A stretch of DNA of 64,000 nt from Podarcis liolepis. Its lineage: Eukaryota. The first letter of the stretch is position 1. Each line of letters starts with the position of its first letter. The position numbers were made by a program, and so were the translations under genes. The notes beneath the pieces are model-generated. The model did no database searches, was not told where the DNA came from, and saw only the letters and a list, made by a program, of their open reading frames with translations. Below are positions 1 through 48,059 of the stretch, in pieces. Location of the stretch: NCBI GenBank assembly GCA_965112155.1, contig OZ218099.1. The stretch is one strand, 5' to 3'.

Positions 1-1084
1 TTAAAAGCAAAGTGCTGCCCCTTTCATTCTCCTGTGTAGGGTAGTCAGCACGTGTTTCTGGCAGGATTCCTGTGTCTTTTAATGACTGTGACAAGTGGGT
101 ATCCAACAGCGGAATCTTGCTGGAGTCACCTGCTGAATTTCTGTTTGGATTGCTGCCGATAAGGGGCGTAGGGGCTTCTTCTGGGAAAAAGATTTGGTAG
201 CCCAAACCCTTAAGTGCTGTTCTCCTTGTCACTTCCTCCAAGATTCTGTGGTGCTTTCTGAAGTGTTGCAGACAGGTTAGTCACCAGGTGGGTAATTTCC
301 GAGGATGAGTAAATGCAACAACCTGCCACATCTCTCTATACTATATTTGCACTCATCCCTAATCACACAGACAAGTGTACAGGCATTCACAAACCACAGG
401 CAGGCCTTCCTGTGCTCCCACTGTTGTTGCCACTGCCATCCTGGGTTGGACGGAAGAAAGAAAGCCAGCAGCTCAGTGAAATAGGCAGGTGGGCAGCCCA
501 GGCAAGCCTTCCTACGTGCTCTCTGTCATTGCTACCACAATATGGGTGTGTGTAGAGGAAACAGGTCAGCGGCCCAGGCAGGTAAACTGGCAGAGTTGGC
601 CACCCGGACAGGCCTTGCTGAGCTCCCTCTGTTACCATCTGCAAAGGGGCGGCGGCGGCGGCAAGAGAATGAAGAGGCCCTCTCCCTGCTGCTGCCAGAA
701 GGAAATCTGCAAATGAAGCAGAAGTGGGGAGATAGGGGAAAGTTTACTGCCCATCTTGTGGGTGGGGATTGAGCCAGTTGTGAGGGGTTGGGTGTGGGAG
801 AGGTGTAAAACGAGAGGATTGGCAATGGGGGTGGGGTTATATAGTTTATAAGTCCTGCTTCTGATTTGGGAAATGTTTTTGGTCTTTGTGCTACTAGCTT
901 CATGCTCCCTTTCTCCTGGGTTGACTGCCTAAAAGACACGCTTGACTCTTCCACTGCCTCCATGCCAAGCTCCTTTTCTCTTTTTCTCAGGCGTGGACCT
1001 CATCCTGTTGCCTTGTGGTCTTGGTGCAGAGGGAGCAGCCATCAAATTTCCACAATCTGTATCTATCTGTAGACTGATCTAGCA

Positions 1085-1460
1085 GTACGATGTGGAGAAA
1101 GTTGATAGAGAAGTTTTCCTCCCCTTCATAAAAATAGAACTAGATGTTGAATGTTGGAAGTGCCACAGCACACAAAAGGAAGTATATCTTCATTCAGGGC
1201 ATAGTTAAACTACATGCTGTCACAAATGTTGTGATGGTCACCATCTTTAAGGCTCCTGGTCATGGTGGCTGTGTATAATCTCACGTGTCAGAGGTGATGT
1301 GCTTCTGAATACTGTTTGTCAGGAAGCACAAGGGGAGAAAGTGCTGTTGTGATCGTGACCTGGTTGTTGACTTCCCGTAGGTCTGAGTGGCCACTTTGAG
1401 AATAGGATGCTGGACTAGATAGGTCTTTGGTCTGATCCAACAGAACTCTTCTTATTCTTA
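1085..1460 (+). mobile_element. Degenerate CR1-like LINE 3' fragment
   Basis: Ends in gatgctggactagatagg...tctgatccaacag...cttcttattctta, a CR1-type tail seen in related copies at ~11760-11920 and ~41515-41730 (minus strand). Confidence 0.55.
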
Positions 1461-2861
1461 TATCAGCTAGATCTTATCCTGATTTGTTAGTTGCTCCAAG
1501 TATTTTAGGTTATCTTTTAAAATGCATTTTATTATTATGGAACAGAAACACGGAACATTTCCTGGAGTTGCTTTCTATATCTCTTAGCCCCTGCCCTTGT
1601 TGCTGTTTTGAATTGGGAAGGCAGCAAAATAAACTGAAATTTCAAGAAGATCAAGGTTGCTTATTTTCTCATATGCTGGTGGCTGCAGTAGCAACTTGCC
1701 TTCCCTTCCAGTTTTAATGTGTAAAACTGAGCATTGACCCTGAGTACTAAAATCCTTGACTAGAATGATTCGTTTCCTGATCAACCTGTTCTGTTTGTTA
1801 GTAGGTTAATCAGACCAAAGACTGTAAAGGGGTCTGTCTACTAAATTACAAAAAAGGGAAAAAAAGATTGGACATATTGCTCAAGAGAACCCTATTATGT
1901 TTAAATGGAGACAGAAGCTGTCTAAATGACAATGACAAGCTGGCTTGAGTGACTACTGCCTCTTGCTAACTTGTAGCATGCTGTAAACCTTGGTGGATAA
2001 GTGAGGGAGTATTACAAATTAGTGCATTTGTAGTTTGGGCAGGAATAGGAGAGTGGTTTGGGCATCCACAGACCAGATCAGGCACGTTCTTCAGCCATGA
2101 TGCATTTAAGACTATCAGCGCCTGGCCTGTGGAATGTTTTCTGACAATTCTAGTTAGGAGAACAAACTTGAAGTTTAACCTTCTGTTGCCCTGTGGTTCA
2201 AGTGTGGGATTGTGTTGTGAGCCATTCCACTTGTAACGTTTTTGCAAAGGAGTAATGGCTAATAATTGTATTGATCAGGTTAGATAAGACTTACAGGCCA
2301 GAGCCTTATTGTAGCACGATACAGTGATTGGGTTTTGGCTCTTTCCTGATGAATTTCTCGTACATGGAAGATTGGAAACTACAAATACTTGTGTGTTCGC
2401 TATTTATTTAGCAGCTTTTAACCTTGCTTGTTTAGACTTCAAAAGTCATTTCAGCTGACAGAATTTTTAAAAAAGAAAAAGAAAACGCAAATCATTAAGA
2501 GCAAAGAGAAAATGCAACCATTGGACATGCCTTTAACCCAAACACTCTCCTAAAAGGATCTTAAACATTATACTTTTGAAAGCTGATGCAAGACTTCGTT
2601 AAATGCATTCCCTAGGGATACTGTTCCAAAGAGTACCCCTCATCCTCCTGCAACAAACAAGGGAACTGTTAAGCATTGCTTTTCCAGTGTCCCCAAGGAC
2701 ATAATAGTGGTGGTATGCCTCTGATAACTTTGGTTCAGGGCTTTAAATATCAAAAATATACTTTGATGTGTGCTTAGAAGCACACTGGCAATGCATGCAA
2801 ATGTTTGAAAACAGATGGAATATATTGTCAGCAATCTACCCCCATTAAGAGCTTTGCTGTT

Positions 2862-3060
2862 GTATTTATTTATTACATTTATATTCTACTTCTCTAAGGA
2901 GCTCAAAACAATGTACACGGTCCTCCTTTCTTTACCCAGCCCTCCCTGTTATCTTCACAACAACTTGTTCACTAGCCCAAGGTCACCCATCAAGCTTCAT
3001 GGCTGAATGGGGGTTTGAACTTAGGTTTCTGTAGCCTGGACATTCTAACCATTACACTGT
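2862..3060 (-). mobile_element. Old SINE (Squam3/MIR-like)
   Basis: Contains cccaaggtcaccca...gcttcatggctga...tttgaac...ctaaccattacac, with a TTTA-rich tail. Confidence 0.6.
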
Positions 3061-3650
3061 CCATTGCCCAAACATAGCGTGGAGTTTAGCTATAGCTGAC
3101 ACAATAATGTATACTGTAGTTTAACAGTGCTGAACGAAAAGGAAAAAAATGGATGCTTTTTGTGCCATCTGGTGGCCATTTATTTCCTACACTAGTGAAA
3201 AGGGTCTACAAAATAATGTTATCCACTGCACCTCTACAAAACTGGGTGTTGTGGCCATGCATACTTCTTTGTACTTCAGCTGGAGAAGATGACCCTGCTG
3301 TGGATGGATGCCCCCACACTACCCTGATGGAACAACGCAAGAGAATGCTGTAGAGAAAAACTAAAAGAAGAATTAGTTTTATAAAGACATGAATTCTAAA
3401 CACGGAAGCAGTGACATGCAGTGATTTTTTTTGTAGGGGAACGCTTTGGGTCAGAAGCACCACCTTGTGAGGATGGTTGCCAGTGGGGGGGGGGGCAGAA
3501 GTCTCCTGGGCTTTGAGGAGGAGGTGCCAGGCTTTAATGCTTTAATACTCTAATTTACCAGGAACATTTAGGGGACTAGCCTAGTCCCCCTAGTCAACTG
3601 CCCGGAAGCTGGTGAGGTTGGGGAGTACAGAGGACCCTTATAACTGAAGT

Positions 3651-3998
3651 ATACCTGAAGGAGTGTCTCCACCCCCATTGTTCAGCCCAGACACTGAGGT
3701 CCAGCTCCAAGGACCTTCTGGAAGTTTCCTCACTGCAAGAAGTAAGGTTACAGGGAACAAGGCAGAGCGCCTTCTCGGTAGTGGTGCCCACCCCCCGCCC
3801 TGTGGAACACTCATCAGATGTCAAGGGAATAAACAATTCTCTGACGTTTAGAAGACATCTGAAGGCAGCCCTGTTTTGGGAAGTTTTCGGTGTTTGATCT
3901 TTTATCGTGTTTTTAATATTCTGTTGGGAGCATCCCAGAGTGGCTGGGGAAACCCAGCCAGATGGACAGGGTATGAATAATAAAGTATTATTATTATA
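3651..3998 (+). mobile_element. L2-type LINE 3' end
   Basis: ORF-end-like ...agagcgccttctcggtagtgg...tgtggaac...tttagaagacatctgaaggcagccctg, followed by a 3'UTR and an (ATT)n tail. Confidence 0.65.
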
Positions 3999-6900
3999 AC
4001 TGTGTTCAGTCACCTAGTTTTGATTTGTTATACAAACTTGAACGAAGCGAAACAGCCAATCGGGCGCAGGGCAGCAGGCCTGTGTGCTGAGGGTTCTGCT
4101 CTGGCCACGCCCTCCCAGTTCTACAGGAGATCACTGGAGATCAGACCAGGCAGGCCCGGGGCCTGATGTGCTCTGCTCGCGTTTCTTAAAAGTATGTGCC
4201 AAAGGCAGGCTCCTGGGCCTCGGAAGGGTTTGATCCTTACTCTTGTTCTTTACAGGGTCTGTCTTTAGGTCTTTTAAGCGGGCTGTTTCACTCCACCACC
4301 CCCCTCTCTGCCCCTTGGAGCTGGTCTCCCAGAGAGCTGGCAAAGCGGTAGTATGGATTGGGCCTTCTGGGGAGCCATAGGTGAAGAGAAGCCACATTCC
4401 AGACTGGCAAGATGGAGGTCGGAGGTGAGGGGGAGTAATAGGCTGGGTAGCCCGGGGAGGAGAAGAGGCTCGGAGACTATGATGCCAGCCCTCTTGGGGG
4501 TCCAAGGAGGGGGTGTTGTGGCTTTGTCTAGGGACAGGTAGCCCTGGTCTTCACCGCAGGGGAGGGAGGGGAATGTGACAGGATGAGTGGAGCTGAGAAG
4601 TAGAGAGATTTCCCACTCTTAATGTGAGGTGGCTTCCGTTTGGGCCCAATCGAGGGACTTGGGAAGGTGAAGAATGGCTTTGATTTACTTAGCTGTACCA
4701 TCTGGCTTCTGCAGGCTGATAATTTAAGAAAAGGTAGGCCCTTTGATTATAACATGCTGTTCGGTCTAACTTAACATAATCCCATCTGGTTACCTTTCCC
4801 TGTCTTGGCCTCTTGCAGGTTTGCACTGTGGCAGGTCAGAACTGGGTAGTAATTCAGGTTTACGTTCCTTGAGGGAGAGGATTTTTATTTCTGTTGGGCC
4901 AGTTTGTACAAGGCCCTAAAAATCTGTGGTTACTGTGGGACTGAGTTCTTTAGAGTGGAGCGTGGCAAGTGGCTAACAGAGGGAATGTCCACACTTTGGA
5001 TTCCTATGTTGAATTATTAAGAGAGAGCATTATTTGTTAGGGCTGGTTGATGGTCCTGGAGCTTATTGATTAAATTATGATTGTACATAAGTGTGCTGAT
5101 TGATACCCAAACTTCATATTGAGAGGTATGTGTGTTATAGTTAAAATGTGTTGAGAGGGATGCCTTTTCTAAGAATTGGGGGGAACTGGAGAAGTTCAGT
5201 GTTTCTTATGTTAAGCATAGAATACTTTGCTAATTCTCCATATAGGGAAAGTAGTACTTTGGTGCTATGCAGAAGTAGGCTGTGAAGTTTGAGCTCTGTT
5301 TCGATGATGTGCGTAATGTAGAATTAGGCTTTTCTAGAATGGAAAATAATGTTAGTGGTGTCTTTGGCAGACTGGAATGGGAATCTTGGGAAGGCGTGAA
5401 GGTTATATAAATGAAGGAGCAGATCGTTTAAGATGCAAGCAGTGAAAATAGGGAAAGTGCTTTTACTCTTGAAAAAGGAATCCGTTTTATCTTCTAGTGA
5501 GTTTTGTTTAGGATGTGTGCAAAGAAAAAACAAAGCAAACAAAACTATATAAAGGTGGTATACTTCTGGAAATCAGACTTTCATAAGTTTTTTCTTTTTG
5601 TTATACATCTTAATCTCAGCTCCTTTGCTATGGTTGTGCAGTGCGGAGATATATTTATTTTTTAATGCCCAGGAGAGAACCCAAAAGATCACACAAGCAA
5701 AATTCTTGATTTTGTTCAGCATCAGGTCCATACTGAAAATCTTTAACTGGGGTCACCAGTCAGTCATACTTGTATTGTTTGTAGCAGATGATCATTACAT
5801 GGAAGAGTCACCAGCTAACTGAATTTTGCTTTTACAGGCTTAACTGCAGTAGAGTATATGTGACCCACTCATGTAACTTTCCATGTGATGTACTTGTTTG
5901 CTTTCAGAAGCAGACTCACCGGGGTTCACTTCAAATGAATGGGTACCTTGTGATGCAGCTGTATAGCTTGGCTTGGTGTGCATTCAGCTTCCAACAGCCA
6001 GCGTATGAATAGAGTGCTGAGTGGAAGGCTTTATGCACCCTTCAGTGCTTACTCTTTATTCTTTTTAACATAGGTTGAGAGGTAACAGGTTGAGACGCAT
6101 TACTTAATTCCAACTGTGCTGCTTCCAGTTCGTGATCTGATCCACCATCTGCGAAGTACTTCAGATGAATGGAAAAGTTCAAGGGACACTTGGCCACAGA
6201 AAAGAGTTTTGAGAGAGATGTGGCCCAGCACCATTCCCTGTGGTCCAGCCACCAGAGGGGGGTGTTGCACATGGTTTCTAAAGATGGTATAATGCTGATT
6301 GGTTTGCCAGTTTCAGAATGTATGATTCGAGCATCTCTTGTTACCAATTAATGAGAAAAACCATGGGGTGTATGTCACTTGTAATTGTTGGCAAAGTGTA
6401 CCTTTTGTGCTCTGTGCTCTTTGTTCAGTCATTACTTGGTTTGGAAAAGAGAAAATGGTTGATGATACCTTTTGCAGATAAGATTATCTGTTTCTGCATT
6501 AATCACAAAAGACACAAGCATAAGAGACGCAGGTGATCTCAGAAGTTGCCTCAGTGTGCTAGAATGTGTGGAAGTGCTAATGTTGGAGTTGTAATGTGTA
6601 TTACTATGCCAGAAAATAGTCATGTCGTATATCTCCTTTTGCAAAGCTCTTAGCACATACATGTGCCTCTTGAGAGCAAACCTGTGGCTTTAGAGCTACG
6701 GTATATGGTGAGAGAGGGTGTGAAGTACATATAAAGGAATAAGGTTTCAGAAAGTGGAACACTCATTAGCAATGCATTATGTGTAGCGAGGTGCTAAAAT
6801 ATCGCAAACAGTCAGATCCTAACAATGTGTACTTTGGAAGTAAGCCTGCTTGATGCAATGAGAAATCCTTAACATGTAGATAAATCTTCCAGTTTACATC

Positions 6901-9615
6901 TAGATAAACTTTACAAAGCCATGTAAGGTTGAGGCTGCAAAGAAGGATCACTTTCAAATCCCAAATGATTGTTGCAAGAGCTATATTCGTATCTTCATTC
7001 TCTCCTTTGCAATCCTGTTCACAGAGCAAGGAGCCACTTTGAGAGAGGAATGGATTTCAGCTGATCAGCCAGCAAACATAATAGCCATGTCTTTTCTTGC
7101 TCTTCTTCATACCTAAAGCACTATCTATAGAAAGTGTGTGTGTGGGGGGGAACATATGTGTGTGTATACACATTGTGAAAACAATATACATCCAGGCCCC
7201 ATTACATGTAGATGTGTGAGTACCTAAGGTGCAGCTTATTCTGACTTGTACTTATTGTGTAGAGGTCACCGTATTGCACTGAGCCGTACTGTTTTGTTAC
7301 ACAAAGCCTTTAGGTCAGGTTGATTTCTGGTCTACCAGCTTTTGTTGGACTCCCATCTGCTGCAGTCAGCATGACCCGTGGTCGGCTAAGATGGGAGTTG
7401 TAGTCCTACTTTAGACTGGTATGCTGGGTTCAGCATTTTGGAACAGGGGACAGTCAGAAGGATGGACAGCATTGGTGAATTTAGCTGCTGGTTGACAATA
7501 CTACTATTTTATGCTTTATACCTGCCAGCTGTATTGAGAATGAAATCAACTTGTCCAGCCTGGCTGTGGAAAATGTGCATGAGAATGTGTGATATCCTCA
7601 TTGTGGGGTTCAGACTTGTGGAAGAAAAAAAATGATGTTGCTGTGAAGTTTTGCCTTTTTTTGTGGGGAAGCTGTGTAATGGGATCACCACCCTTTGCAA
7701 TCTCCTATCAGGATAGTTGTAGCTCAATATTGTTCTGTACCTTGTGTCTGAGAGGCCCTTATTTTTCACAGAATACCTCTTGATTACATTGCTGTCAGCA
7801 AACGGAGGAGGGGGGAATTAAAATTCTGACATTTATATTAAAAAAAGCTGTTTGGAGACTTCACACAGACAAAGCCCTAGCTTTCCTGAGTAGCGTGGGC
7901 TTACTGGCAAGCTTGCATTAACTATGCAAACCCTGGTATCATGTTACATTAGCGGGTATGGAACTCTGTAAGTGTGGTGCTCCAATTCTAAAGTGTTGCT
8001 CTTTGGCTTGATGGTATATCTCTTGATGTCTCAATCTAAACATTGATATGCTGGTGCTGCAAACATCAGGATAAAACTCTGCCAAAAGTTTCTAAACAAT
8101 ATTTTCCATTGAGCATAACTCATTATTTGGTAGTGGTTTGGAATTTTGAATTCAGAAGCCATTTTTAAAACATTATTGCAAGGCTTTATTGCATTTGTTT
8201 TAAAAACAAAGACTATTCACCAGTTCTCCTTCCTTTCTCTCATTAAAGTTTTCAGGTGTAATTTAAGACTTGTTTATGAAAATACATAAGACAGAAACTA
8301 TGCAGGCAAACATAACTGGAGGATTTTACAGTGAAAACTGTGGCTCTCGGCAGCAAACTTGTTAAAGTGCTGGGAATGGATAATGAACTAAAGGGACATA
8401 GCTGACTTTCATATTTTAGTTAAGTATAATAATGTGCACAGCATGTATAAGCATGTTTCCGCTCATACCATTTCTGCAACCTCCATTGGTAACCACTTAT
8501 ATTTTGTGCTTGCCAATTAATGGAGGACTCCATCTACTAGTGTTTTGTAAATAATGACAAATGTGCAGAAGCCCGCCCTCTAAAAGCACTAATTGTTGCA
8601 TATCTCACTCTATCTGGTGAGTGGTACAACTCCCACATCAAAAATTCAGGTGGTCAGTGCTACCTAATTGATTTACATCAGTTTACACCACCAGCAATTA
8701 CTGAAATGTAGGGAAAGGAATGGCCAGTAGTTAACCACAGTCTGTTAGCAGAAATTAAAAGATTCAGCTTCCCCAACCATCTTTGTTTTAACTAATTCTG
8801 ATGCAGGTCGTTATCTGATTTTTATTTGCTACCTGTTGCTCTTTACTGTGGCTTTAATGCATGCCTTTTGCACATTGTGAGCCCTCTCATGAACCATTCT
8901 GGTTAAGAGGCAGTGTTGAATATGTCAAATTAAATAATATTGCCTGGCGTGTTTTAACTGAGAAGCATTCCTCAGTGTTTCGTTTGTAGCTTCTGTGTGG
9001 GAGCTTCATGTTTCTAACCACTCTCATTCTTAGTGAAGTATTCCAGGCTGCTTGGAATGGCAGGGAGTCGTATCGTACCAGATGATTCTTTCAGCCAATT
9101 AGGGTGACCCAAGTTCCCAGGGAGTCAGCTTAACCGATTAGAGACTCCCAATATCTGACATATGAAATTGGGTTCATTGTAAGGTAGCAAAGAACAGAAA
9201 GAGCTCTGTCAAAAGAATCTGCTGGCAGAATGTGCCAAGAAAGAAAAGTCTGAAATATCCTCAGGTCCCAAATATTCACTTTCCTTTCTGAAAAGGGGGG
9301 GGGGGAGGGCTGCATCTTACTCGCAAGTTCTGAGATCCAGTTCTAAAGAGTGTTGTGACAGTCCAGTAGGTGCAGTTGGAAGAGGATGCCACTAAGTACA
9401 TTCTGGTATTGAGTTTACATAATGAGAAAATTGGTTCCATTACCTATCAATTTGGTACATTTGAAAGATATACAGTGATGAGGTGATATATTCAGACTTC
9501 AAAAGAAAGACGTGTTCCATTTCTAAGAAACAAAGCTGATGGTAGCACAGTTTGATTTTGCTTGTTCCCAAGTTGCATTGCCCCAGGACAAGTTGACCCC
9601 ATATTCAGAGTCTAT

Positions 9616-9868
9616 GAAGAAGAAGAAGAAGAGTTTGGATTTGATATCCCGCCTTTCACTCCCCTTCAGGAGTCTCAAAGCGGCTAACATTCTCCTTTCC
9701 CTTCCTCCCCCACAACAAACACTCTGAGAGGTGAGTGAGGCTGAGAGACTTCAGAGAAGTGTGACTGGCCCAAGGTCACCCAGCAGCTGCATGTGGAGGA
9801 ACGGAGACGTGAACCCGGTTCCCCAGATTACGAGACTACCGCTCTTAAACACTACACCACACTGGCTC
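9616..9868 (-). mobile_element. tRNA-derived SINE, Squam3-like, near full length, (CTT)n tail
   Basis: Reverse complement starts GAGCCAGTGTGGTGTAGTG.TTAAGAGCGG (A box), has a B-box-like GGGTTCACGTC and the core GGGTGACCTTGGGCCAGTCAC, and ends in (CTT)n. Confidence 0.8.
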
Positions 9869-9926
9869 AGTAGTATCCTGAATTTTGCTTGCCAGTGGCC
9901 ACCTCTGAGCAACTGAAGATTTGTCC

Positions 9927-9930
<4 letters not shown>

Positions 9931-9969
<39 letters not shown>

Positions 9970-11377
9970 TATTTATTAAGGTTTCAAAGAAAAGAATTAC
10001 ATGAATTAAAAAAAATAAGAAAAAGAAAGACAAAAGTAAAAATAAAAGAAAAAATACAAATACAAAAAAAGATAAAAAACACTTTAAAAAATACATCAGT
10101 CTTTCCATACCTTACATTCATTTCCTTGTTTCCCTGACCTCCTCACGCCTCCCTTTTTTGTATTCCAATTCAGTTAGTTAATTCAGCAATTTCTTTCCCT
10201 CTTTGTTTTTATCTTAGTCCTTTAACATAATATATTATAACTTTGGATTCTTACCTGTTAACAATCCATTTTTACATACACCTTTATAACATTGCTGCTT
10301 AAACCACTTAACTTCATTCTGACATCATTCTAACATTCATTAATTTTGCAGTATTTCTGTAAATAGTCTTTAAATTTCTTCCACCGACTCTTCTCCCTGG
10401 TCTCGGATTCTGCCAGTCATTTCCGCCAATTCCATGTAGTCCATCACCTTCATCTGCCATTCTTCCAGAGTGGGTAGATCTTGTGTCTTCCAATACTTTG
10501 CAATAAGTATTCTTGCTGCTGTTGTGGCATACATAAAAAAAGTTCTGTCCTTCTTTGGCACCATTTGGCCGACCATGCCCAGGAGAAAGGCCTCTGGTTT
10601 CTTCAGAAAGGTATATTTAAATACCCTTTTCATTTCATTATAAATCATCTCCCAGAAAGCCTTAATCCTTGGGCACATCCACCAAAGGTGAAAGAATGTA
10701 CCTTCAGTTTCTTTACATTTCCAACATTTACTATCGGGCAAATGATAGATTTTTGCAAGCTTGACTGGGGTCATGTACCACCTGTATATCATTTTCATAA
10801 TATTCTCTCTTAAGGCATTACATGCTGTAAACTTCATACCTGTGGTCCATAACTGTTCACAGTCAGCCATCATTATGTTATGTCCAACATCTTGTGCCCA
10901 TTTAATCATAGCAGATTTCACCGTTTCATCCTGTGTATTCCATTTCAACAGCAAGTTATACATCTTTGACAAAATCTTAGTTTTGGGTTCTAACAGTTCT
11001 GTTTCTAATTTTGATTTTTCCACCTGGAAGCCAATTTTCTTGTCCAAATTGTATGCCTCCATTATCTGATAATAATGAAGCCAGTCTCGCACTTTGTTTT
11101 TTAATTTCTCAAAACTCTGCAATTTCAGTCTATCTCCCTCTTGTTCCAAAATTTCCCAATATTTTGGCCATTTGACCTCCATATTGAGCTTTTTCTGAGC
11201 CTTCGCTTCCATCGGTGACAGCCACCTTGGGGTTTTATTTTCCAATAGGTCCTTATATCTTATCCAAACATTAAACAATGCTTTCCTGACAATATGGTTT
11301 TTAAATGCTTTATGTGCTTTGACCTTATCATACCACAAGTATGCATGCCATCCAAATACATTGTTAAAACCTTCTAA
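9931..11377 (-). mobile_element. 5'-truncated LINE-1 (ORF2 C-terminal region plus 3'UTR)
   Basis: Minus-strand ORF 10370-11443 contains the L1 ORF2 Cys/His motif CWKCKETEGTFFHLWWMC. AATAAA on the minus strand near 9972-9977. Flanking 15-bp direct repeats aagatttgtccgtgt (9916-9930) and aagacttgtccatgt (11378-11392). Confidence 0.88.
9932..9966. repeat. (TA)n microsatellite at the L1 3' end
   Basis: Directly visible. Confidence 0.95.
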
Positions 11378-12043
11378 AAGACTTGTCCATGTATAATCTG
11401 GAAGCTTTTCTTCCACTGCAAATGGCAGGTGTGGAACTCCCAATCCAGATAAGGATTGCAGCAGCAGTAAGAGGTTAAAGCTCCCTGTTCTCCTGCCAAT
11501 TCATACTGAATCCCTGTGCCTACTAAGTTCCTTTTTTAAAAAGGCCATTAATTCAATTGCTAACTGTGTGAAAAGCATCTTGTACGGCCCTAATTTTAAT
11601 GGCACATCTATCTGTACCAGCATCTAAATGTTCTCTTTGGGCTTCAAAATGTGTGTAATTAAGAAGGCATTAATTGTCCTTTAGTTGGTAGTTTATATTA
11701 CGCTACAATAGTTCTGCCAAATGGGGGGGGGGCAGGGGTTGACCCCCAAGTAGTTAATGATATAAGAAGAGCCCTGCTGGATCCAATCAAAAGCTGATAT
11801 GATTTAGCATCTTGTTTCCCACCATGGCCAACCAGGTACCAGATATTGGGAGGAGGTAGGATATGTGCACTCCAGCAACTGGTATACAGAGGTGTGCCTC
11901 CTCTGATCCTGGAGGTAGGATACAGCACCTTTCTCCCCTTTGATGTAGCAGTATTATGGTAAAGGTATTATGGGTACAGAATTTACTTGTACAGACCATT
12001 TGCTGTCATCCCAAACTGTCCATTCACTTAGCCTTTCCAGTTA

Positions 12044-12214
12044 CTGTATTTTCCGTCTATAAGACGCCCCCATGTATAAGACGCCCCCTATTTTGGGGGA
12101 CCCAGAATTAAGAAAATGGGGGGAGATGTAGCCGTGTACAGTATAAGATGCCCCCTAATTTTTGACATTATTTTTTAGGGGGGAAAACCTAGTCTTATAC
12201 ATGGAAAAATACAG
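12044..12214. mobile_element. Tc1/mariner-type MITE
   Basis: TIRs ctgtattttccgtctataagac / gtcttatacatggaaaaatacag with TA on both sides; internal tataagacgcccc repeats. Confidence 0.8.
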
Positions 12215-15062
12215 TAGGTCTTCTTCATCTGGTTGGACTCTTGCTCAGCAGCTTGCATATCTGCTTGTAGTGTTGAAGGGTAACCCTGTTAAGTCAGAGG
12301 CACGGAAATTGCTGAGGAGGGCAGAGCATCTCAAGGACTCTTCCACCTGTCCTCTTGGTGTGCCATTCCATGTCTTACACAACCATTGCTTTCTGCGGCT
12401 GTGGCTGGTTGCATTTATTCCAGCATGCTCATTAAAAAATATTTTAAGCTTTTGTGCTGAACCCGTCAGAGATTTGCCTCCTGGGATGACAAAAAAATAA
12501 TAATCACCTGATCTAATGAAGCCTCACCTGCACAATGTTTAACCCTTTCTGTGTCTTCAAAGGTGAGAACCTGTTTGTTTTTTAATGCCACAAATTAAGA
12601 TTCCTAACTTCTTGAGAGCTTGGAAACCTGGCAACTTATCTGCAGTTAGTAGCTCTACCCTGCTCTAAGTACTTGGTTTCTACTACTGCCTACAAGTCAG
12701 TCTGGGAAGGAAATTGTTTGCTCTACTTCTGCTACATATCACATTGATGTATTTGATCTGGATTGATTCAGCTGAATTGTAGTACTGTGAAGAAGAGATC
12801 ATTATTTCCTTTGTTTTTCTGCTAGAGATGCGTTAACATGCACCCAACGGATTTGCAGTATGAGCAGTAGTTGTTGTGAACTTTTGTCTTTTCTGTAAGT
12901 CGGGTCTAGAATAATTGTTTGGATTTCCAGAAATGGCATGCTTAATACTCAGTTTGAAGCATTTTCCAGCCATGTGAGAAGTTGTTCTTCCTGGGTGCAT
13001 CATTAGTCTACCTAGTTCAGTAAGCTGTCTTTGGCAGTAGTCAAATCTGACTGTTCTCAGAGGAAGTGACTATGTCCTTGCTTTGTGATCTGAATGATGA
13101 TAAAGTGTTGGCCTGCAGAGAGGCTTTCTGAACTTTATGAAATGCAGAGCAGCAAAGGGATCCTCTTTGCATTCTGAGTTAATAGTTCCGAGTTTCAGTC
13201 CTTAAGCTGGTGCATCTCAACAGTTTCAGCAGAGAGAATGGACAATGGAGGAGTGCAGTTTCCTCATGGACAACCTTTGTGTGCATGTTTTGCTGAACAT
13301 TAGTGCAGAAGATGCAAAGTTGGTAGCCTGTTCCTTTAAGGACTTTGTACAAAGCTGGCACCATGCCCAGCCTCTTCTCTTCTTCTTCCCACTTCAAGGC
13401 AGTTCCTTTGGGGCTTTTCCTGAAACAATACCGCAAGCTACCCTGCCACTCTGCTTGCTCTGCTTGCCCTGCAGACAGTCTCTGAATCAAGAGCCAGCTC
13501 TGCTTTGAGGGACAATGGAGAGTTGCAGCACAGGCAGAATGAACTATGCAGCCTGAGTCTGGATCTGTGCTGAAGGCGTAGAGAACAAGGCTGTCGTCTG
13601 CAAACAGCGATATGGAAGCTGAACCCCGTAGTCCTCAGAGTATGTGGGAAGGCGACTCCGAATTCAGCTTCCAATTTTGGACCCAGCTTTTTCTGTGGAT
13701 GCACTTGGTTGGCCGGTTGGTCACTTACGTCCTGCGTAGCTTTGGGGGGCTAAAGCAATAACTCCTTCCTGTCCCTTATGACTTGGTTGTTCTTTGGAGG
13801 TCCACTGTGACATCTAATATTTTTAGAGCTCTTTGGCAAGCAGTCCTATGAGGAAGAGACGTTGCCCTGTATTTTTTCTTCTTTCCTTTTCCTTACCTCC
13901 ATTCTTCTCTGTTCTGGATGGCCTTGCCTAAGAAAGGCTTCTTAACCTTGAGAGAAGGACAAAGCTTTAGAAGCAAGATTTCTGGTTTCTCTTCCCATGT
14001 TTATCCACACCCTCTGGACTGTGCAGTAATCTTTTGCTTCATTCAGAGAATATGAGCTTTTGGGGGCTGCTTAGCAATAGAATCCAGAAGTTATGAGGAC
14101 TGCCATTCTGCAAATGAATGTTCACCCGTGGAATGTTGTATTAGTGTTTAGAAAGAGTGATTTCTATCTCCAGAACATGGAGCATCCAAGGGGATATGGA
14201 CTTGAATGAGCTCCTACTTTGAGTTTTGGGGGGCCACACCTTGTCTTATTCCATCTACAGCATCAGAGGTTTACTTTGGCGTGCTCTAGTTTCATCAAGT
14301 TATCTGAACATCTTGGTCCCTTCCAACTCTACAATCCTATGATTCTATCTCAGTCTCCCTCTCTCCTTGAATTGTTTCTTCTTTCTGTTAAAGAATCACC
14401 TCGTTTTGGAAGATAATAGGGCTTCCCTACCTGACAATTTCCTTATTTGCCCTACCTTCAACCCTGAGGGCAAAAGAGATTCGGAGAATTTGTGAGCTAT
14501 TTTAAGCCTCATTGCATAGTCCTTGCTACTGCTGATCTGGCAGGCCTTCCTCCCTCTGTATTAATCAAATCTGCCTGCTGTTCACCCTCTGATCAGCTGT
14601 GTAAGTGACCAGGCTCCCTGTATTTCTTTCTAAACAGAGAGAATATGGAATGAACTGTCTTGGAGCCTTTCTGAGCCTTAGCGTGGGGGCTTGGGAAAAC
14701 CTGATATGGATGGCTGCCCCAGACTTGTTGCTGAACTGACATGAATGCTATGGTCCAGGGAGGTGGGTTTGATGGAAGTCGAGAGCAGTCGGCTCAAGCC
14801 AAAATGCCTGTGTGAATCACTTGGAGGGGAATGTTAAGAACTCTGCTGAATCTGGGACTGTGTCTGTTCTCCAGTTGCTGCCTTTACCCCTCTCTTCCTG
14901 TGGCGGGACAGGAAAAGCAGTTCTGCTGCCTCTACCTGTTGGCAAATAGCAATGACTGAAGAGAGTGCCCTCCTGGATCCTGACTGAGCTGCTTGGCTGT
15001 GTTTGCTCCGAGAGCAGAGCTGGGGCAGAGGAAAAGAACCGGTGATAAAATAAAAGAGAAAC

Positions 15063-15252
15063 ATGAGCCATGGAGCTGAGGTGAACTCTCAAAACTCCAG
15101 CAAGGACAAAGGGTGTAAGATGTCGGCGCTACAGAAACTGGAGAGTCTGGCAGGGCGGATCTTTTACTGGGGGCCACGGAGTGATGCTGGGGCACCGAAC
15201 GTTGGGGAGGCAGCCTATGAATCTGAGCACACGGCAGCCTGGAATGAGCAGA
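15063..15252 (+). CDS. PRKACA: PRKACA alternative first coding exon encoding a long, C-beta2-like N-terminus (C-alpha-L type)
   Basis: ATG at 15063 follows an in-frame TAA at 15051. Translation MSHGAEVNSQNSSKDKGCKMSALQKLESLAGRIFYWGPRSDAGAPNVGEAAYESEHTAAWNEQ matches recalled human C-beta2 motifs TALQKLEGFASRLF and SEHTALWDRS. It ends at A|GTGAGT (phase 1); joined to exon 2 (TG AAG) it gives ATG AAG = MKEFLAKAK, as in C-beta2. Confidence 0.9.
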
Positions 15253-15677
15253 GTGAGTTGACAAGGGAGCACGGTTTCCAGGGGTGCCAGAATCGGTGGG
15301 TTCCCCCGAGACTCTGCTCCAGAGCTGCTGCTGTTCTGTGCCTCTTGGTGCATGCGTATGCTTGTGGTTGAGTGTATAACTGGAATCTGAAATAGGGCTC
15401 TGATATTTTTCAGAGAAGCCCGCAAAAGGCTATAGCCTTAGCTCCGACAGCCATTCTGGCTATGACTGTTGACTACCTCTTTCCTCATGCTAAGCTAAAG
15501 TGTAGGGTGCTCAACTTTAATGAGGCCACAGCTGCTTGGTGTGTGGCTTTGATTTTGGCCTTAGAGAAGCCCCATCGGTTCTCAAAAGCCCACTTCAACT
15601 CACTCTTTCTTACTATTTGTTATCAAGCTGTTGGAGCCGGATGCTGCTCTAACTCTGCAAGTGTCTATTGCACGGAG

Positions 15678-15813
15678 TAGAGGTGGGGAGCCTGTAACTC
15701 TCCCAAAGTTGTTGGGCTTCTGCTTCTATCAACCCTGGCCCAAATAGCCAATAGGAAGGGATGATGTGAGTTGTAGTCTAGTAACATTGGCGGGGCACAG
15801 TTCCCCATCCCTG
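15678..15813. mobile_element. hAT-type MITE (~130-bp family)
   Basis: gaggtggggagcctg...gatgatgtgagttgtagtc...cagttccccatccctg; same family as the copies at 27267, 27500, 29500, 36740, 43434 and 48285. Confidence 0.6.
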
Positions 15814-27214: not shown

Positions 27215-27628
27215 AGGAACACAGGAAGCTACCTTCCACCAAAGCAGACAATTGGTCAGTCTAATTTAGGGATGGAGTCCCTGTGGCCCTCCAGATGTTG
27301 GACTCCATCTTCCATCAGTCCCAGCTGGCATGACCAATGACCAGGGATGATGAGAGTTGTGGCCCAACAACATGGATGGCCACAGGTTCCCATCTCTAGT
27401 CTATACTGACTGGGAGCACCTTTCCAGGATTTCAGACAGGTCTTTCCCAACCTACTCGGAGATACTAGAGATTGAGCCTGGAGCCTTCTGCATGTAAAGC
27501 AGGGGTGGGGAACCTGGGGCCCTCCAGCTGTTCTTGGACTTTTTACTCGCATCGGCCCCAGCCAGCATGGCCAATTTAAGGGACAATGGGAGCTGGAGGT
27601 GAGCAATATCTGGAGGCCCAGAGGTTTT
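27215..27628. mobile_element. Nested repeats: minus-strand SINE interrupted by a hAT MITE (27267-27398), followed by a second MITE copy (~27500-27628)
   Basis: The SINE sequence resumes after the MITE at duplicated gtcta; the uninterrupted SINE type is seen at ~55058-55190. Confidence 0.6.
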
Positions 27629-30600
27629 TCAGTTGCATGTGCCCTATTGCTATACGGGTGTCCCCCCTACTTAGGCAGAGATTATGTTTCAGGGCCCACG
27701 CACATAAGCAAAAATCGTGTAAGTGGGGAGCACCCTCTAAAAAGCCTCTGAACGCTTCCTTTTCCCTGCTCTCCAGCTCTCTCTACAATGCAGACTAAAA
27801 TATCAGCTCTGGGGCTGGTTGGAGGCTGGAGGACACGCAGGCAAGTAGTGGCGGTGGTGGCTGCTGCAGTACCCCGCCCATCAGCTGTTAGGGAGGGAGG
27901 CTGTGTGCTCGGGTCTCTTTGGGGCTTCCTCCGCCGTCACTGATGTCTTTTTCAGGCTCTAGGGAGGGTCTCCTCACAAGCAACAAGGACTGTTCAGCTC
28001 TCTCCCACGATTTCCTGCTTTGCATTTTTTTATTTATTTCCTGGCACTGCATCTATATGTGTTTGTGTACAAGTTTATTGCCTGTAGTCTTTCCCCCTTG
28101 TATGGCCAGAATGCCTAGTAACCTCCAGTTACTTCAGCTTCCCTTCTGATAGGGAGTACAGTTCATCTCCTTGAGCAGCCTGGACCTTGTTTTTACTCCA
28201 TGCAGAAGATACCATCTGCCTGGGAATGCAAATGGTGCCATACCAACAATTATTTGAAGCATGTGTGGTTCCACAAAATGTGTTCCGTAAATAACACTGG
28301 GGCTTTTAATCCCTAGTGCAGCTTTTCTTTTGTATTCCTTTCCATTTGTTTATTCTTAAGGCGTTTATATGCAGCTTAATCATAAGCATTTCCACCAAGT
28401 ATTTTGTGAGAGGACCGCAACCTAAGCTGCAGAGCAGCTAAAATAGCACTTGGAGGTGGCTTTCTCCATGGGAAGCACAAAATAAGTTTTTTTAAAAAAA
28501 TAAATACAGCACGTCCATCATACGATGCTCTAATTTGCCATGCTCATGAAAATCATATGCAAATTGTATTTCATGTGGATTAGCACTGAACTTTCAGCTC
28601 CTGCAGCTTTTCTCGAGGTGCCCCTCTTTCGAACAAGGTGCTCCACCTTGGCTGTCGCTTTGCTGATCTCCGAAGTGCAGAGATAAAAGAGGTGAATTCG
28701 TGTGTCTGATGCGAACAGCTTCTGCGTGGTGAATAAGCCTGGTGGGAAAACTCTTTGAGGACGAAAGCGTGCATGGTGGAGATCGGCGCAGTTAAAGAGC
28801 GTGCCTGCCTATGTTGCTTGAGTGCCCTGTGCTCAGTTTATCTGCCAGCAATGCAGCCTAGTAGTTGTGTTTTGGATACAGTGGGAGAAGAAGGAGATAC
28901 CGGAGGCTTTGAAAGATTACTAGGGCTGCATCTCTATTAGCCCCCCTATGCTCTGGTGTTTACCTTGGCACAGGTCAGTCTGTGAGGCTCTTGTGCAATT
29001 GGACATGGTCGATTAGTTCCATAAGCTGGATTCAGGGAGTCTGACCAAGCCAATGTGAATAGAAAATGCCTTCATCGGGTTCACTGTTTAAGGGGTGCTC
29101 TCAGCTCAAATGGTGTAATGGAGAGTTATTTCTGTGGCAAGAGATGCTTTTAACACCTGGGGCTTTGTCGTAATGAGGCAAATGGTGTGTTTCTGCTCTT
29201 TCCCCCTTGTTGCTTCTATTCAGCCAACCAATTTCTTGTTCTGTTGTCATCTGCAATTCTGGCTGCAACAGCGGTTGAAGATGTGTGGGGAGGGGAGCAT
29301 AATTAGGAAGGGAAATGGCTTGAGAATCCAACCCCCTTGGGCCAACCCAGTCTTGTATACAGCATACTGTCTCTCCCAGCAGCTAGCATAAGAAACCTAT
29401 TACAAGAAAGGTAGAAGAGCCCTCTAGTGGTCATAGAAAGGATGTTTTCACACATATATTGGGTATCTTAATCTGCAACAGAAATTTGCTGAAGCCCTAA
29501 AGCTGGGGTGGGGAGCCTGTGTCCCCCAGAAGTTGCTGGACTATAACTCCCATAATCCCAGACCATTAACCATATTGGCTGAGGCTTATGGATGGCCCAC
29601 TTTAACTGATTCCGCAGCCCCGCCCTATGCACTTCAGATCTCATGAAGGCAACCCTCTTAAAGGAAACAAGGGGCACCCAAAAATAAAGTAATGATTTCT
29701 GCATACTCAGAGGACTCTCTGGGAGACATGCAGAAGTATGTAAGTTTGTGAGCTGAAAGAACAACTTTTTGAAAAGAGGAAAAAAAGCATTGTGGGCATT
29801 TTAAGACCTTTGGAATGTCAGTGACATACAGAAAAATAGACTATTTACTGGTGCAGTTCATCTCTGTCGGAAGAGGGAAATTCTAGGTTCATGTTGCACC
29901 CCAAAAGTAAGAGGTGCTGTCTTTTTGCTGCTAGCCTCTTCTGGGAGGGGGTTGGGGGCCAGGGAGGGGGGCCATGCTGCTGTTGCTGTCCATTTACAGC
30001 AATGTTAAAATCCTGGGTTTCCTTCATTGTTTTATGTGAGCAGCTCTTAGTTCTGCCCTGGAGGATGGAAAAAGTGGGTCAGATTAGAAGTTGGGCATGC
30101 TGCGTTAGTCTAGCAATTATGTCTATGGCTGCAGGCTGTTGAGCCATAGAATGATGGTGTCAGTTAAAAGTGGCAAGCAGAGGGGGAGGTTGGGGGAGGC
30201 ATGACATGAGGCTAAAATATTTTCACCCTATATATTCCTCTATTTTGGTAATTTTTTTAAAAAAAAGAAGGTGCTTGTACTCATGTCTTGATAAAAGTGC
30301 TGTGGGTACCAGCACCAAATGGCTACCTTGGCAGCAAAAGGTGCCTGCACTCCATATTGGTGAGTGCTGCCCTCCCAGAAACAATATATGCACACATTCA
30401 GACTTATATCTCAATAAAACACTTGGGTTCAGGATTGGCAACCAGCCTTGAACCCTGGGCAAGTTAGCATTTATAGCAGACTCGGGGAATGTTTATGACA
30501 TGTGGGAAAGCAAAAATATGTGAATCTTGAATAGTACTGCTGGCCTCCTGTTTCAGGCTATGTGGAACCCTGTACATTTAGAATTATTTTCTCTGTATGC

Positions 30601-33705: not shown

Positions 33706-34649
33706 CTGTCTGGAGAACAGAGCAGCCATCAAGAATGCAGAATTGTTCCCTCCCTTTGCCTAGACCTCAAGACAGGGTTGTTGGTTTAGAGTGCAGTTGG
33801 AGGCTCTTGGGCATGACGCAGGAGCGACTGACGGCCTGAGGTTAGATGAGATCATAGTGCTCAGCCTGGCCTTAAGGCCTGTGGTGCTCTGTCGCTGTCG
33901 GGGGTCCCTCATGGCTTATGGAAGAGGTCAGTGTTCTGGAGATTGGGAGGGGTGATTGCTGCCCCTTTTTGGAGGGGGGCCCATGGAGCTAAAATATAAT
34001 GCTGAGATGGCCCTAGGAAGGGGGGAAGAGCTGCCAGAATTTTCTTACGTGGCAAAAGAAATCTTGAGGAGTGGGGAGGGGGCTGGGATCTGTGCAGGAA
34101 GGTGTAAGCTGGTGGCGCTCTGTAAGTAATGTGGATAAAGCAGGAGACAAAGGGAAAGTAGGTCAGACAGGCTGAGCTGCAGCTCCACGTCTGTTTGTGT
34201 GCGTGTCTCGGGGAAATCCAGCCGCTCTGTGCTGCAGCATGAAGGAATTGGGTGGGAGGATTGCTGTGAAGGTTTGGAGTGGGAGGATGCTATGAAAGCA
34301 TCCCCAGACTGCGCCTGCCCATGTTCCCTTTGTGTCAGGTACCTCTCCTGCAGGAAATAAGAGGCTGGTGCAAAGCAACCTTATTTCAGGGGCTCCTCCA
34401 TTTTACGGTCTTCTGATCTCATGCCAGGAGAAGCTGCATCTCCACGATGGGAGGGGGGAACTCAAAATGAGCTTTTTTCTGGTGGATGCAGGGGCAGACT
34501 TAACTCCACATTCTGAACTGGGAGCCAGGATCCCTGGAATCGGTAGTCAGGCTCCATTTCTGTAGATGGTAGCGAACCGTTCAGCAAATTTACCCTGGTT
34601 GAGGAGTGCTTGCTCGGCCTTTTCTGCTTCTCTTTGCTTTATGTAGATA

Positions 34650-38075: not shown

Positions 38076-38137
38076 TGAAGGAGTTTCTTGCCAAAGCCAA
38101 AGAAGAGTTCCTCAAGAAATGGGAGAACCCGTTGCAG
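38076..38137 (+). CDS. PRKACA: PRKACA exon 2 (62 nt; KEFLAKAKEEFLKKWENPLQ, A-helix)
   Basis: Polypyrimidine tract plus tacag| acceptor and CAG|gtatga donor; translation matches the PKA-C A-helix. Confidence 0.97.
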
Positions 38138-39995: not shown

Positions 39996-40124
39996 AATAC
40001 GTCCAGCCTGGATCACTTCGACCGGCTCAAGACCCTGGGTACAGGCTCTTTTGGGCGGGTGATGCTCGTGAAGCACAAGGAGACCGGGAATTACTATGCC
40101 ATGAAGATCCTTGACAAGCAGAAA
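39996..40124 (+). CDS. PRKACA: PRKACA exon 3 (129 nt; Gly-rich loop GTGSFG and catalytic Lys)
   Basis: ttcag| ... AAA|gtgagt; [50 protein letters not shown] is alpha-type (beta has KHKATEQ). Confidence 0.98.
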
Positions 40125-40222
40125 GTGAGTTTGAGCCTGTCGTGGAGTTCTGGGAGTTTGTGCCTGAGGTTGGCAAGAGGGAGGCCCAACTGTCTCTGGC
40201 TGACTTCCTTTCTGTCTTGCAG

Positions 40223-40321
40223 GTTGTTAAGCTGAAGCAGATCGAGCACACCCTCAATGAAAAGCGCATTCTCCAGGCTGTGAACTTCCCATTCCTTGTC
40301 AGGCTAGAGTATTCTTTTAAG
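40223..40321 (+). CDS. PRKACA: PRKACA exon 4 (99 nt; C-helix)
   Basis: tgcag| ... AAG|gtaaag; [33 protein letters not shown]. Confidence 0.98.
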
Positions 40322-42424
40322 GTAAAGGGTGTCTTTGCACTCTCTCTCCCCACCCCTGCCTAAATATTCCTTCTCTGGCTTTCTGGTCCTCTGGACACCT
40401 GCTCTGCTGCATCAGATCAAAGGCACACAGGGGCCAGCCAGATACTTAAGGGAAGCTAACCACTTTACCCTAGCACCCAGGTGATCTTTTTGCCTCTGTC
40501 TGGGCTTGTGGCTAGCTGAGCATCCACCACTGCAGGCAAGCCCAGCTGGCTGGATACTTTCTGTGCCGGTACAATAGGTGCAGCATGCTTTCCCTTTGGG
40601 AGCAGCCTGGGTGGATGGATCTCCTGGGCTAGAGCACACATTGTCATGATAGGCCCTCAAAACTCTTCCTTATGATAGGCCTTCAATATTTTGTTTTGTC
40701 CTACCTCTTTCTGGCGTTTGTGCAGCTTTGGGCAAGTAAACAAGGGGGCACTATAAGCATACAGAATGTTAAATAAAGCCAACAGTATTTTATCATTTTG
40801 TGTTTGAGATACCCAGAGAACAATCTTACTGGGTTGCCTTATATAAATACAGTAAGTAAGGCTGCAATCCTAACACCTCTTATCTAGGAGTAAGCCCCAT
40901 TGAATTCAGTAGGATTTACTTTTAAGTCAATGTGAAAGTGCTATAGGGAGCATGCAAGTCTGGACTATGTGACAAGGCAACCGTGCCTTGTCTATTAATG
41001 CAGCTCTAAATCGAGGTTCTGCAGGCTTCCGTTCATCTCAGCTACATGGAAAGGATATAAAAAGCCATTGAGTCGTACCTATTGCCACAAAGGGCAGAAC
41101 CATTTTTTAAAAATCTGCTTTGAAGGAAATATGCATGTTTATATACCCTTTGTGGCTGTAACCTAAAACCATGGACACTGTGTCTGTTTGAAAGCACAAC
41201 CAGAAGAGGAGGCCTCTACTGCTGTCTTATAGGTTCCTTCCCATTTTCCCTCTGCTATAGCAGTCCTTGACAATGCCGTGTCAGAAGCTTACCTCTCAAT
41301 CAGAATAAAGCCTGAACAAATACATTCATGCTACCTTGCAGAGATTGTTTCAGTTGTATACTTTGGGGGTTAAAAAAAAAAAAAGTATCTTAATTCTAAA
41401 TACTATTTCCTTGGCAGTAAGTCCCATTGATGTTAGTGGGACTTGCTTCCAAGCTGGTTGGTGTTAGACTGTGTGTCTAATTCATTCCCTTGGTAGTGAG
41501 AGTAATTCTGTAAGTCTACAAGAAGATCCTTGCTGGATCAGCCCAAAAGCCCATCTAGTCCAGCATTCTGCCCAACAGTCTATACTAGCCAACCAGGTGC
41601 TTATGGGGAGCCACAAACAGGATCTGAGCACAACACTCTTTTGTTTATGAACTGGTATTGAGAGGCCTGCTACCCCATAGTGGAGTTACTATAGTTATCA
41701 TGACTAGCGGTCATTATTAGTCTTATCCTACATGACCAGGTACTAAGAGGTTTGAGTTCACCTTAGTAACTGCTACTTTTGAAGTTGTTGCCTTTTTTTT
41801 AAGGTCATGGCAGGAAGAGACTCTGAGCAGAACATAGCACTAAAACCAAAACACTCTGCTATAGAAACAGTTTTGCACCAAGCAAAACTATATGATCGTT
41901 GTGCAAATAAGTTGTGCAAATGAATGGGGACTAGAGGACAAGGAACTTGTATACATTCAGATTTTAAAGAACTTGCATTTATTGAGCGGGAAGCAAGGCA
42001 ATAGTGGTAGAGAGCGATGGACTAGGGAACAAACGTGAAGATTGGAATTGGGGGCAGTTAGGAAAGTGTAGCCATGTGAAAGGAACGAAGTACTGATCTG
42101 AAATGCTGGGACCTGTTCCTTCACCACCTATAGTCTATAGGCATTGTATCAACATTTTGGTTTTTTATCTGCAACTGCAAGGGCAAGATACTTCATTTTT
42201 TTAAAGGAAATTGGCAGGAACTTGAATTCTTTCTCCCTGCCCAACAGCAAACCCAGTTTCTGTTCTAGAGTGCCCCTATGGATGTGTGAGTACACTGGTG
42301 CAAGCACCACTGCAGAAAGGCAATATAGAAGTAAATAAATTGGGGAGCTGTGGCCCTGAACATACAAGGTTGGGGTGGGTGCAAAGCAGTGCTGGCCACG
42401 ACCCTGAGTTGTTTCTGCCCTTGA

Positions 42425-42514
<90 letters not shown>

Positions 42515-43433
42515 TGAGTGTGCTCCCCTCTCATTGTAAGGTTGGGATGATGCTCTCAGTTGTGGGAACAGAAAAGCTGAGAGTTGGGCTTCCTGGGTTA
42601 GAACAGTGGAAAGGAACCAGGAAAGAACTAGGTTTCTCTTGTTCTGCACTTTAAAGTTGAGTGGAGGATATCTTCCCCTTCCAGCAAGCCCTAACTTCTG
42701 GGGTAAAGAATAGGCAGTTTAGAAAAAAGTCTAATGATAGGACAGAAGCTGCATTTGCTTTGACATTAATTCCCATCCTCCTGGATGTGAAGCTGGTGAC
42801 TTGCAAGAAGCAGATCATTCCTATCAGAGTGTGATGACAACAACACTGAGTTCCTGATTATTCTCGTTAACACTAAGGGGCAAGGGGTGACCTGGCTTGA
42901 CAGGCCCATATGAGCGGAGTGCTTTTCATCAGAGGATTGTTAGCGGAGACTTCAGTATAGAAGCTACCACTACAGAACATGCTTCTATCTTGCTTTGTAT
43001 CCATTTACTGTATGGAAAGCGGGATGCTTGTTAACATGCTCTCATTTAACTGTGTAGTTATGTGTGCTTCAGATAAATTGCCATCTTGTAGAACATTATA
43101 GAACTGGCATAGCACTGAGACTGAGCAACGGACCAGGAAGCCCCCAGTTCGAATGGTGCCTCTGCCATGAACTCAGCTACATGGCATTACGCAAAGTTCT
43201 GTCTCACAGCCTCAGCCCCACCATCTGCAGCACGGAGAGTAAATAGTAATGACTTACCTTACAGGATTGTTGCAATGATTACACCTACATAAGAACATGG
43301 TCAGAATAAGGGAAGAGATTCTGCATGCGTTCAGCCAGAGGTGGGGCAGGGAGAGCATGAGTGAAATGTGTGAGATAAGACTCAAGGTCCTGTTGAATGG
43401 GGAACAGGGGAGAGATCTGGTCTTGGTTTGTGG

Positions 43434-43563
43434 CAGGGGTGGAAACCTGAGCCCTTTTGCTGAGAGTACAGCTCCCATCATCCCTGACTGAGCTGGTTGG
43501 GGCTGATGGGAGTTGGAGCCCAACCCAACAGTGCTCTGGAGGGCCACAAGTTCTCCATCCCTG
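43434..43563. mobile_element. hAT-type MITE with 8-bp TSD
   Basis: caggggtggaaacct ... agttctccatccctg, flanked by gtttgtgg / gtttatgg. Confidence 0.75.
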
Positions 43564-43610
43564 GTTTATGGGGATCAGTGAAGGTGGCATACATTAGAGA
43601 TGGCTTATGA

Positions 43611-43787
<177 letters not shown>

Positions 43788-44514: not shown

Positions 44515-44790
<276 letters not shown>

Positions 44791-47510: not shown

Positions 47511-48059
<549 letters not shown>

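Follow-up and report, generated by a model that had tools for sequence, protein, structure and literature searches.

Organization of the PRKACA locus

The stretch of DNA analyzed here (hereafter, the window) comprises 64,000 nucleotides of contig OZ218099.1 from the Podarcis liolepis assembly GCA_965112155.1. Its plus strand carries exons 2-10 of PRKACA, the first exon of SAMD1 downstream of them and, 22.8 kb upstream of exon 2, a 190-nt segment at 15063-15252 that is very probably the coding part of an alternative first exon of PRKACA, exon 1-L. Exon 2 (38076-38137, 62 nt), to whose acceptor exon 1-L is joined, is followed by exons 3-10 and the stop codon (39996-49995), which were recognized as the kinase core by kinase motifs and open frames. 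These are exon 3 (39996-40124, 129 nt), exon 4 (40223-40321, 99 nt), exon 5 (42431-42513, 83 nt), exon 6 (43637-43763, 127 nt), exon 7 (44297-44392, 96 nt), exon 8 (44539-44661, 123 nt), exon 9 (47604-47768, 165 nt), and exon 10 (49870-49992, 123 nt, stop TAG), all on the plus strand, and AG/GT borders were found throughout exons 2-10.

PDB searches with the exon peptides returned solved PKA Cα chains, matched over residues 36-78, 255-309, and 310-350, and no chain named as a beta subunit was returned, so that these matches do not separate alpha from beta. The subfamily call was therefore based on published signature sites (PMC3625193). Six of the seven alpha-invariant residues are present (Gln35, Thr37, Glu64, Gly66, Ser109, and Glu334), including Gly66, the sole signature site without overlap between the two subfamilies (PMC3625193), and none of the three beta-invariant residues Asp42, Gln67, and Arg319 is found, their places being taken by His, Asn, and Lys. 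The single departure from the alpha signature is Tyr68 in place of His68 (40089-40091); the 2013 signature set contained no reptile Cα (PMC3625193). As a separate observation, the residue preceding the VTDFG motif is Glu181 (43761-43763), and residue 318 is Cys (49894-49896). Mammalian Cα has Gln and Phe at these two positions, which, like position 68, are otherwise highly conserved.

The first exon of SAMD1 (57352-58254, plus strand) encodes WH and SHD domains (Pfam E-values of 1e-27 and 4e-18) and lies about 7 kb downstream of the PRKACA stop codon on the same strand, within the only CpG island of the window (56801-59100). The gene is PRKACA, as a preliminary description of this DNA had proposed from SAMD1 synteny and alpha-type residues.

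The canonical first exon of PRKACA, exon 1-1 (MGN...), is absent from positions 1-15062 in all plus-strand frames, and no CpG island is present in this interval; the first exon of Cα1 and its promoter are therefore located outside the window, over 15 kb upstream of exon 1-L. The published exon order is 1-1, 1-L, 2, where exon 1-1 encodes 14 residues with a myristoylated Gly1 that fills a hydrophobic pocket (PMC5526564). The intronic position ascribed to the segment in the preliminary description follows from this order and not from the window, which shows no exon 1-1 upstream of it. Elsewhere in the same upstream region, the minus strand carries a 357-residue open reading frame (ORF) at 10370-11443, which has no Pfam match and a Cys/His-rich C-terminal part, CWKCKETEGTFFHLWWMCP. 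We take this part to resemble the end of an L1-type retrotransposon ORF2.

Borders and reading frame of exon 1-L

The coding part of exon 1-L (15063-15252, plus strand), delimited by its ORF, an RNA contig, and orthologues, starts with an ATG at 15063 and contains 63 codons plus one base (A), with the translation MSHGAEVNSQNSSKDKGCKMSALQKLESLAGRIFYWGPRSDAGAPNVGEAAYESEHTAAWNEQ. This ATG has an A at position -3 and is the first in frame past a TAA at 15051, directly 5′ of it; a second in-frame ATG occurs at 15120. At the 3′ border, aga is followed by the splice donor GTGAGTTG (15253-15260, plus strand), a phase-1 site with the consensus GTGAGT after 15252. The donor is kept in orthologues, whose read-through ORFs all start with SE(L/W)(T/G) past this point, and the RNA contig has a loose end behind 15252. 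The border of exon 2 reads tttctctgcttctgcttacttacag on the intron side and TGAAGGAG... on the exon side, with a good acceptor and an exon start at 38076. Joining the two exons creates the split codon A+TG, which encodes Met and is followed by KEFLAKAK. With the exons checked singly and the length obtained by arithmetic, the 190 nt of exon 1-L and exons 2-10 sum to 1197 nt, or 399 codons. All of these elements had been named in the preliminary description and are borne out in the window: the ATG-started 190-nt segment with a GTGAGT donor whose phase fits exon 2, the split Met codon and the 399-residue frame across exons 2-10, for which borders and summed lengths agree, and the second ATG at the start of a conserved helix block.

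Upstream of exon 2, the plus strand holds 18 GTRAGT sites, four of which lie in the required phase at the end of an ATG-open segment of 100 nt or more. Exon 1-L is the longest of the four; the other three (27586-27718, 30206-30359, and 33983-34121; 133-154 nt), located between exon 1-L and exon 2, are probably due to chance. The pattern of exon 1-L, taken from the sequence alone, is not decisive, and it rises above chance because of the RNA junction and the conserved orthologues described below.

Transcripts and the 5′ leader

Contigs assembled from public sequencing runs were compared with positions 14300-15700. In one run (X1), an 810-nt contig with a depth of 154 covers 14761-15252 and continues after 15252 with TGAAGGAGTTTCTTGCCAAAGCCAAAGAAG, the first 30 letters of exon 2, which occur once in the window, at 38076. 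The junction 15252^38076 is used in transcripts; its detection in this contig, from a run whose type, RNA, is a guess of the index, answers the search for this junction that the preliminary description had called for. An RNA origin is favored by the contig total of the run, about 130 Mb, and by the spliced contig as such. Across the coding part, the contig is identical to the window; it differs from it at four leader positions (14840, 14869, 14922, and 14924).

Furthermore, 14 small RNA-like contig runs from six studies and under four organism labels contain 67-100% of the sampled words of 14950-15252, and their contig sets total 65-148 Mb, which is transcriptome-like, in contrast to about 1260 Mb for four genome-sized runs. 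Another run (X8) has low-depth contigs only, one of which passes the exon 1-L donor to 15308 and stems from DNA or from RNA that was not spliced. In raw bulk RNA-seq data of the same species, two runs, of which about 12% each was sampled, gave 0 reads on exon 1-L. The exon is therefore not expressed ubiquitously, and its expression in these samples is low or restricted.

The 5′ leader extends over at least 302 nt (14761-15062, plus strand), a minimum set by the start of the X1 contig. It has a CpG observed/expected ratio of 0.28, which is not that of a CpG island, and contains four upstream ATGs at 14772, 14804, 14831, and 14952, which open ORFs of 21, 3, 42, and 11 codons, respectively. An additional out-of-frame ATG at 15070, 7 nt past the main start and in the strong context gccATGg, opens a 4-codon ORF (MELR) that stops 35 nt before 15120. 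Given the four upstream ATGs and the strong ATG at 15070, translation of the main ORF may be inefficient.

A minor, longer form of the leader starts with 14638-14695 (plus strand) in a low-depth X1 contig (depth 4.4), in which the letters of 14237-14266 are joined to 14636 onward. Owing to a shared AG, this corresponds to a canonical plus-strand junction, 14268^14638, with GT at 14269 and AG at 14636-14637, suggesting that a minor upstream non-coding exon ending at 14268 feeds the exon 1-L leader. Between this form and the contig of the coding part, positions 14696-14760 have no contig coverage. In the same region, a 35-nt stretch at 14314-14348, ggtcccttccaactctacaatcctatgattcta, is covered at very high depth by each of the four runs compared and carries many different flanks, often with ...GGTTGGACTAGA... 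in front of it. The stretch has the appearance of the end of a repeat that is dispersed and transcribed, and it presumably resembles the 3′ end of a CR1-type LINE/SINE.

Conservation of the encoded peptide

Nine relatives of the exon 1-L peptide were found, comprising seven run-derived ORFs and two turtle proteins; their E-values are as low as 1e-26 for a database of 5.8 billion proteins. A HMMER search against 1.84 billion representatives returned three relatives, all CαL fragments, and a word-indexed search among proteins of 35-110 residues returned eight. One run-derived read-through ORF, from another individual, is 100% identical to the peptide, and the six others show 75-84% identity. The turtle proteins are a protein of Platysternon megacephalum (P0003), named "protein kinase, cAMP-dependent, catalytic, alpha", and a partial protein of Caretta caretta (P0002, CAM4681303.1), in which the exon 1-L peptide is joined to exons 2-3.

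Frameshifts or stops in related exons, which the preliminary description had put forward as evidence against its reading, were not found: across the 63 codons, none of the seven read-through ORFs has an indel or a stop. The Caretta model is the sole relative with an insertion, of one residue near the 3′ end of the exon. It ends with ...HLSQPDTVSQLEEFLAKAK, without a SEHTAAW block, Trp, or junction Met, all of which the turtle-like ORF P0008 keeps; this end could reflect a different donor, a frame slip of the model, or real divergence.

Conservation is distributed unevenly along the peptide. Mean pairwise identity is 62% for residues 1-19, in which MSHGAE and a K-x-K-G-x-K pattern are common to lizard-like and turtle-like sequences, and reaches 94% for residues 20-37 (MSALQKLESLAGRIFYWG; 15120-15173, plus strand), the most conserved block. 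It is 53% for residues 38-53 and 75% for the second conserved block, residues 54-63 (SEHTAAWNEQ; 15222-15251, plus strand). In the alignment of ten sequences, M20, S21, L23-E27, L29-R32, and F34-G37 are invariant. The helix and SEHTAxW blocks that had been singled out beforehand are thus the two with identities of 94% and 75%.

As the measure of selection, identity within the exon was compared at the protein level with that of the read-through sequence. In the seven read-through ORFs, the exon shows 76% identity and the four donor-encoded residues (SELT) 81%, and the value falls to 23% past the donor. This drop across the donor places the coding boundary at 15252, and the comparison argues for selection on the exon 1-L peptide.

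Features of the N-terminal extension

The exon 1-L peptide has no match in Pfam, PDB, or the ESM Atlas. AlphaFold, supplied with the alignment, predicts a single helix at residues 22-34 and low confidence elsewhere (pTM 0.32), with mean pLDDT values per ten-residue block of 48, 61, 85, 70, 57, 55, and 53, the value of 85 belonging to residues 21-30. The best hydrophobic moment, 0.57 for SALQKLESLAGRIF, was reached by 88 of 2000 shuffled sequences; the conserved segment is thus amphipathic, though not extremely so. Within the predicted helix, Lys25 and Phe34 lie nine residues apart and are invariant in all ten sequences. Trp60, which precedes the split Met codon by four residues, is found in nine of the ten, the Caretta model being the one that differs.

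N-myristoyltransferase requires a Gly2. In the exon 1-L peptide, Ser follows Met1 and likewise Met20, and there is no Gly2; N-myristoylation is therefore impossible. This fits the long non-myristoylated N-terminus that the preliminary description had attributed to the product, namely 63 residues with Ser rather than Gly next to Met.

Relation to known catalytic subunit isoforms

Exon 1-L and its product, CαL, were named by Søberg, Moen, Skålhegg, and Laerdahl in 2017 (PLoS One 12:e0181091; PMC5526564), who reported the exon in reptiles, amphibians, and fishes and its loss in birds and mammals. In the same study, it was found to be paralogous to PRKACB exon 1-2, which encodes the N-terminus of Cβ2, with an origin before the gene duplication (PMC5526564, Fig 2D); the preliminary description had inferred the same. 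The features described for the CαL/Cβ2 N-termini include a conserved putative inducible helix in which position 21 is always Lys/Arg and position 30 always Phe (Cβ2 positions), a conserved Trp59 (Cβ2 numbering), predicted disorder, and the absence of a Gly for myristoylation, and a partner-binding helix on a flexible tether as well as a Trp lid over the hydrophobic pocket were proposed (PMC5526564). A 2018 review repeats the description of exon 1-L, with CαL known at the mRNA level only (PMC6143667).

The exon in the window shares with the published one the gene, the site 5′ of exon 2, the phase-1 junction, and about 60 extra residues, along with the lack of Gly2, a helix with the Lys/Arg-Phe spacing of nine, the Trp, and predicted disorder outside the helix. 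There is no difference of kind, and the exon represents an orthologue in one further reptile genome. Beyond the published description, the present data add the extent of the leader (302 nt or more) and its upstream ATGs, the minor upstream non-coding exon, and the invariance of the Met20-Ser21 pair in the sauropsid sequences found. Exon 1-L was thus already described in 2017, including its proposed functional motifs, and the present identification is correct but ordinary. Consequently, "hidden", as the preliminary description called the exon, is overstated, the exon having been published (PMC5526564). Its remark that the class was not wholly new is right as far as publication goes and understates a prior description that is complete with respect to name, distribution, helix, Trp, and lost myristoylation.

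Like exon 1-L, PRKACB exon 1-2 encodes a non-myristoylated N-terminus of 62-63 residues and forms a split codon with exon 2, and Cβ2, like CαL, has an amphipathic helix and a Trp at equal distance from the core. Unlike CαL, it derives from the other paralogous gene and occurs in every vertebrate class, mammals and birds among them. In residues 1-19 and in the linker, the exon 1-L peptide does not appear to resemble human Cβ2. Taken with the feature check, the published analysis (PMC5526564) supports exon 1-L as the alpha counterpart of PRKACB exon 1-2. Cβ2 itself is a catalytically active, lymphoid-enriched 47-kDa kinase (PMC1557514).

Cα1, encoded from exon 1-1, shares with CαL the gene, exons 2-10, and the phase-1 junction to exon 2, whereas its N-terminus is 14 residues long and myristoylated and its expression is ubiquitous. 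Cα2/CαS (mammalian PRKACA exon 1-2) and the non-mammalian exon 1-S resemble exon 1-L in being alternative first exons without a myristoylation site; they differ in having at most 8 codons and in leaving the pocket empty, and the mammalian form is sperm-specific.

Proposed mechanism and alternative readings

We consider it highly probable that positions 15063-15252 form the coding part of PRKACA exon 1-L and give CαL in the following manner. The exon 1-L transcript, which reaches at least from 14761 to 15252 and is spliced to 38076, would start from a separate non-CpG promoter situated upstream of about 14761; its frame runs on through exons 2-10 and specifies the 399-residue kinase CαL. Translation would begin at 15063, and the 63 residues, predicted to be mostly disordered, would replace the 14-residue myristoylated N-terminus of Cα1. 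Following the model of Søberg et al., the helix (residues ~21-36) may fold on binding a predicted partner or membrane and would place a separate PKA catalytic pool there. The segment from the helix to the core could serve as a flexible tether, and Trp60 may act as a lid on the hydrophobic pocket, which in Cα1 is occupied by myristate.

Translation mainly or also from the second in-frame ATG at 15120 seems unlikely to us; the protein would in that case start with Met-Ser right at the conserved helix, and residues 1-19 would be a dispensable or regulated extension. The Met20-Ser21 pair is invariant in 10 of 10 sequences, residues 1-19 are less conserved (62%), the ORFs of P0009 and P0003 (Platysternon) begin at this Met, and the 4-codon ORF at 15070, which ends 35 nt earlier, could favor reinitiation. 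However, the ATG at 15063 has its A at -3 and comes first in frame after the TAA at 15051, and MSHGAE with K-x-K-G-x-K is kept between lizard-like and turtle-like sequences, well above the 23% of the read-through control; the short P0009 and P0003 ORFs, for their part, may stem from the ORF caller or gene model. Somewhat less probable still is that the sauropsid exon encodes two proteins, the 63-residue form from 15063 and a shorter form from 15120 beginning with Met20-Ser21. The upstream ATGs and the out-of-frame ORF at 15070 would then set the choice of start, and a helix at the very N-terminus of the shorter form could anchor to a membrane or partner, replacing myristate; if true, this would be a regulated switch absent from the published description.

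It is very improbable that exon 1-L, while spliced, serves only as a non-coding or poorly translated leader of a regulatory or decay-target transcript. All seven read-through ORFs preserve frame, length, and phase-1 donor, identity falls from 76% to 23% at the donor as expected of a coding exon, and the paralogous Cβ2 is an active 47-kDa protein (PMC1557514); these observations stand against a long leader (at least 302 nt) with four upstream ATGs, the report of CαL at the mRNA level only (PMC6143667), and the 0 reads in two RNA-seq runs, which such a transcript would accommodate. Finally, the segment could be an intronic pseudo-exon, a chance ORF with a chance donor, as might be suggested by the three further segments, ATG-open over 100 nt or more, that end in a phase-1 GTRAGT before exon 2. 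This reading was rejected and retains a negligible probability in view of the spliced contig, the nine relatives with E-values down to 1e-26, and the published exon type (PMC5526564).

Biological significance

PKA Cα is the model protein kinase, and its N-terminus controls its cellular location. For exon 1-L, the window adds annotation and no new concept: it provides a genomic example in which the borders are exact, the junction is supported by a transcript, and the leader has a minimum length, together with orthologues from several sauropsids, and these data are usable for the design of probes, antibodies, and knock-outs in lizard. In the wider family, CαL shows that vertebrates other than mammals and birds retain a further pool of Cα that is not myristoylated, in parallel with Cβ2.
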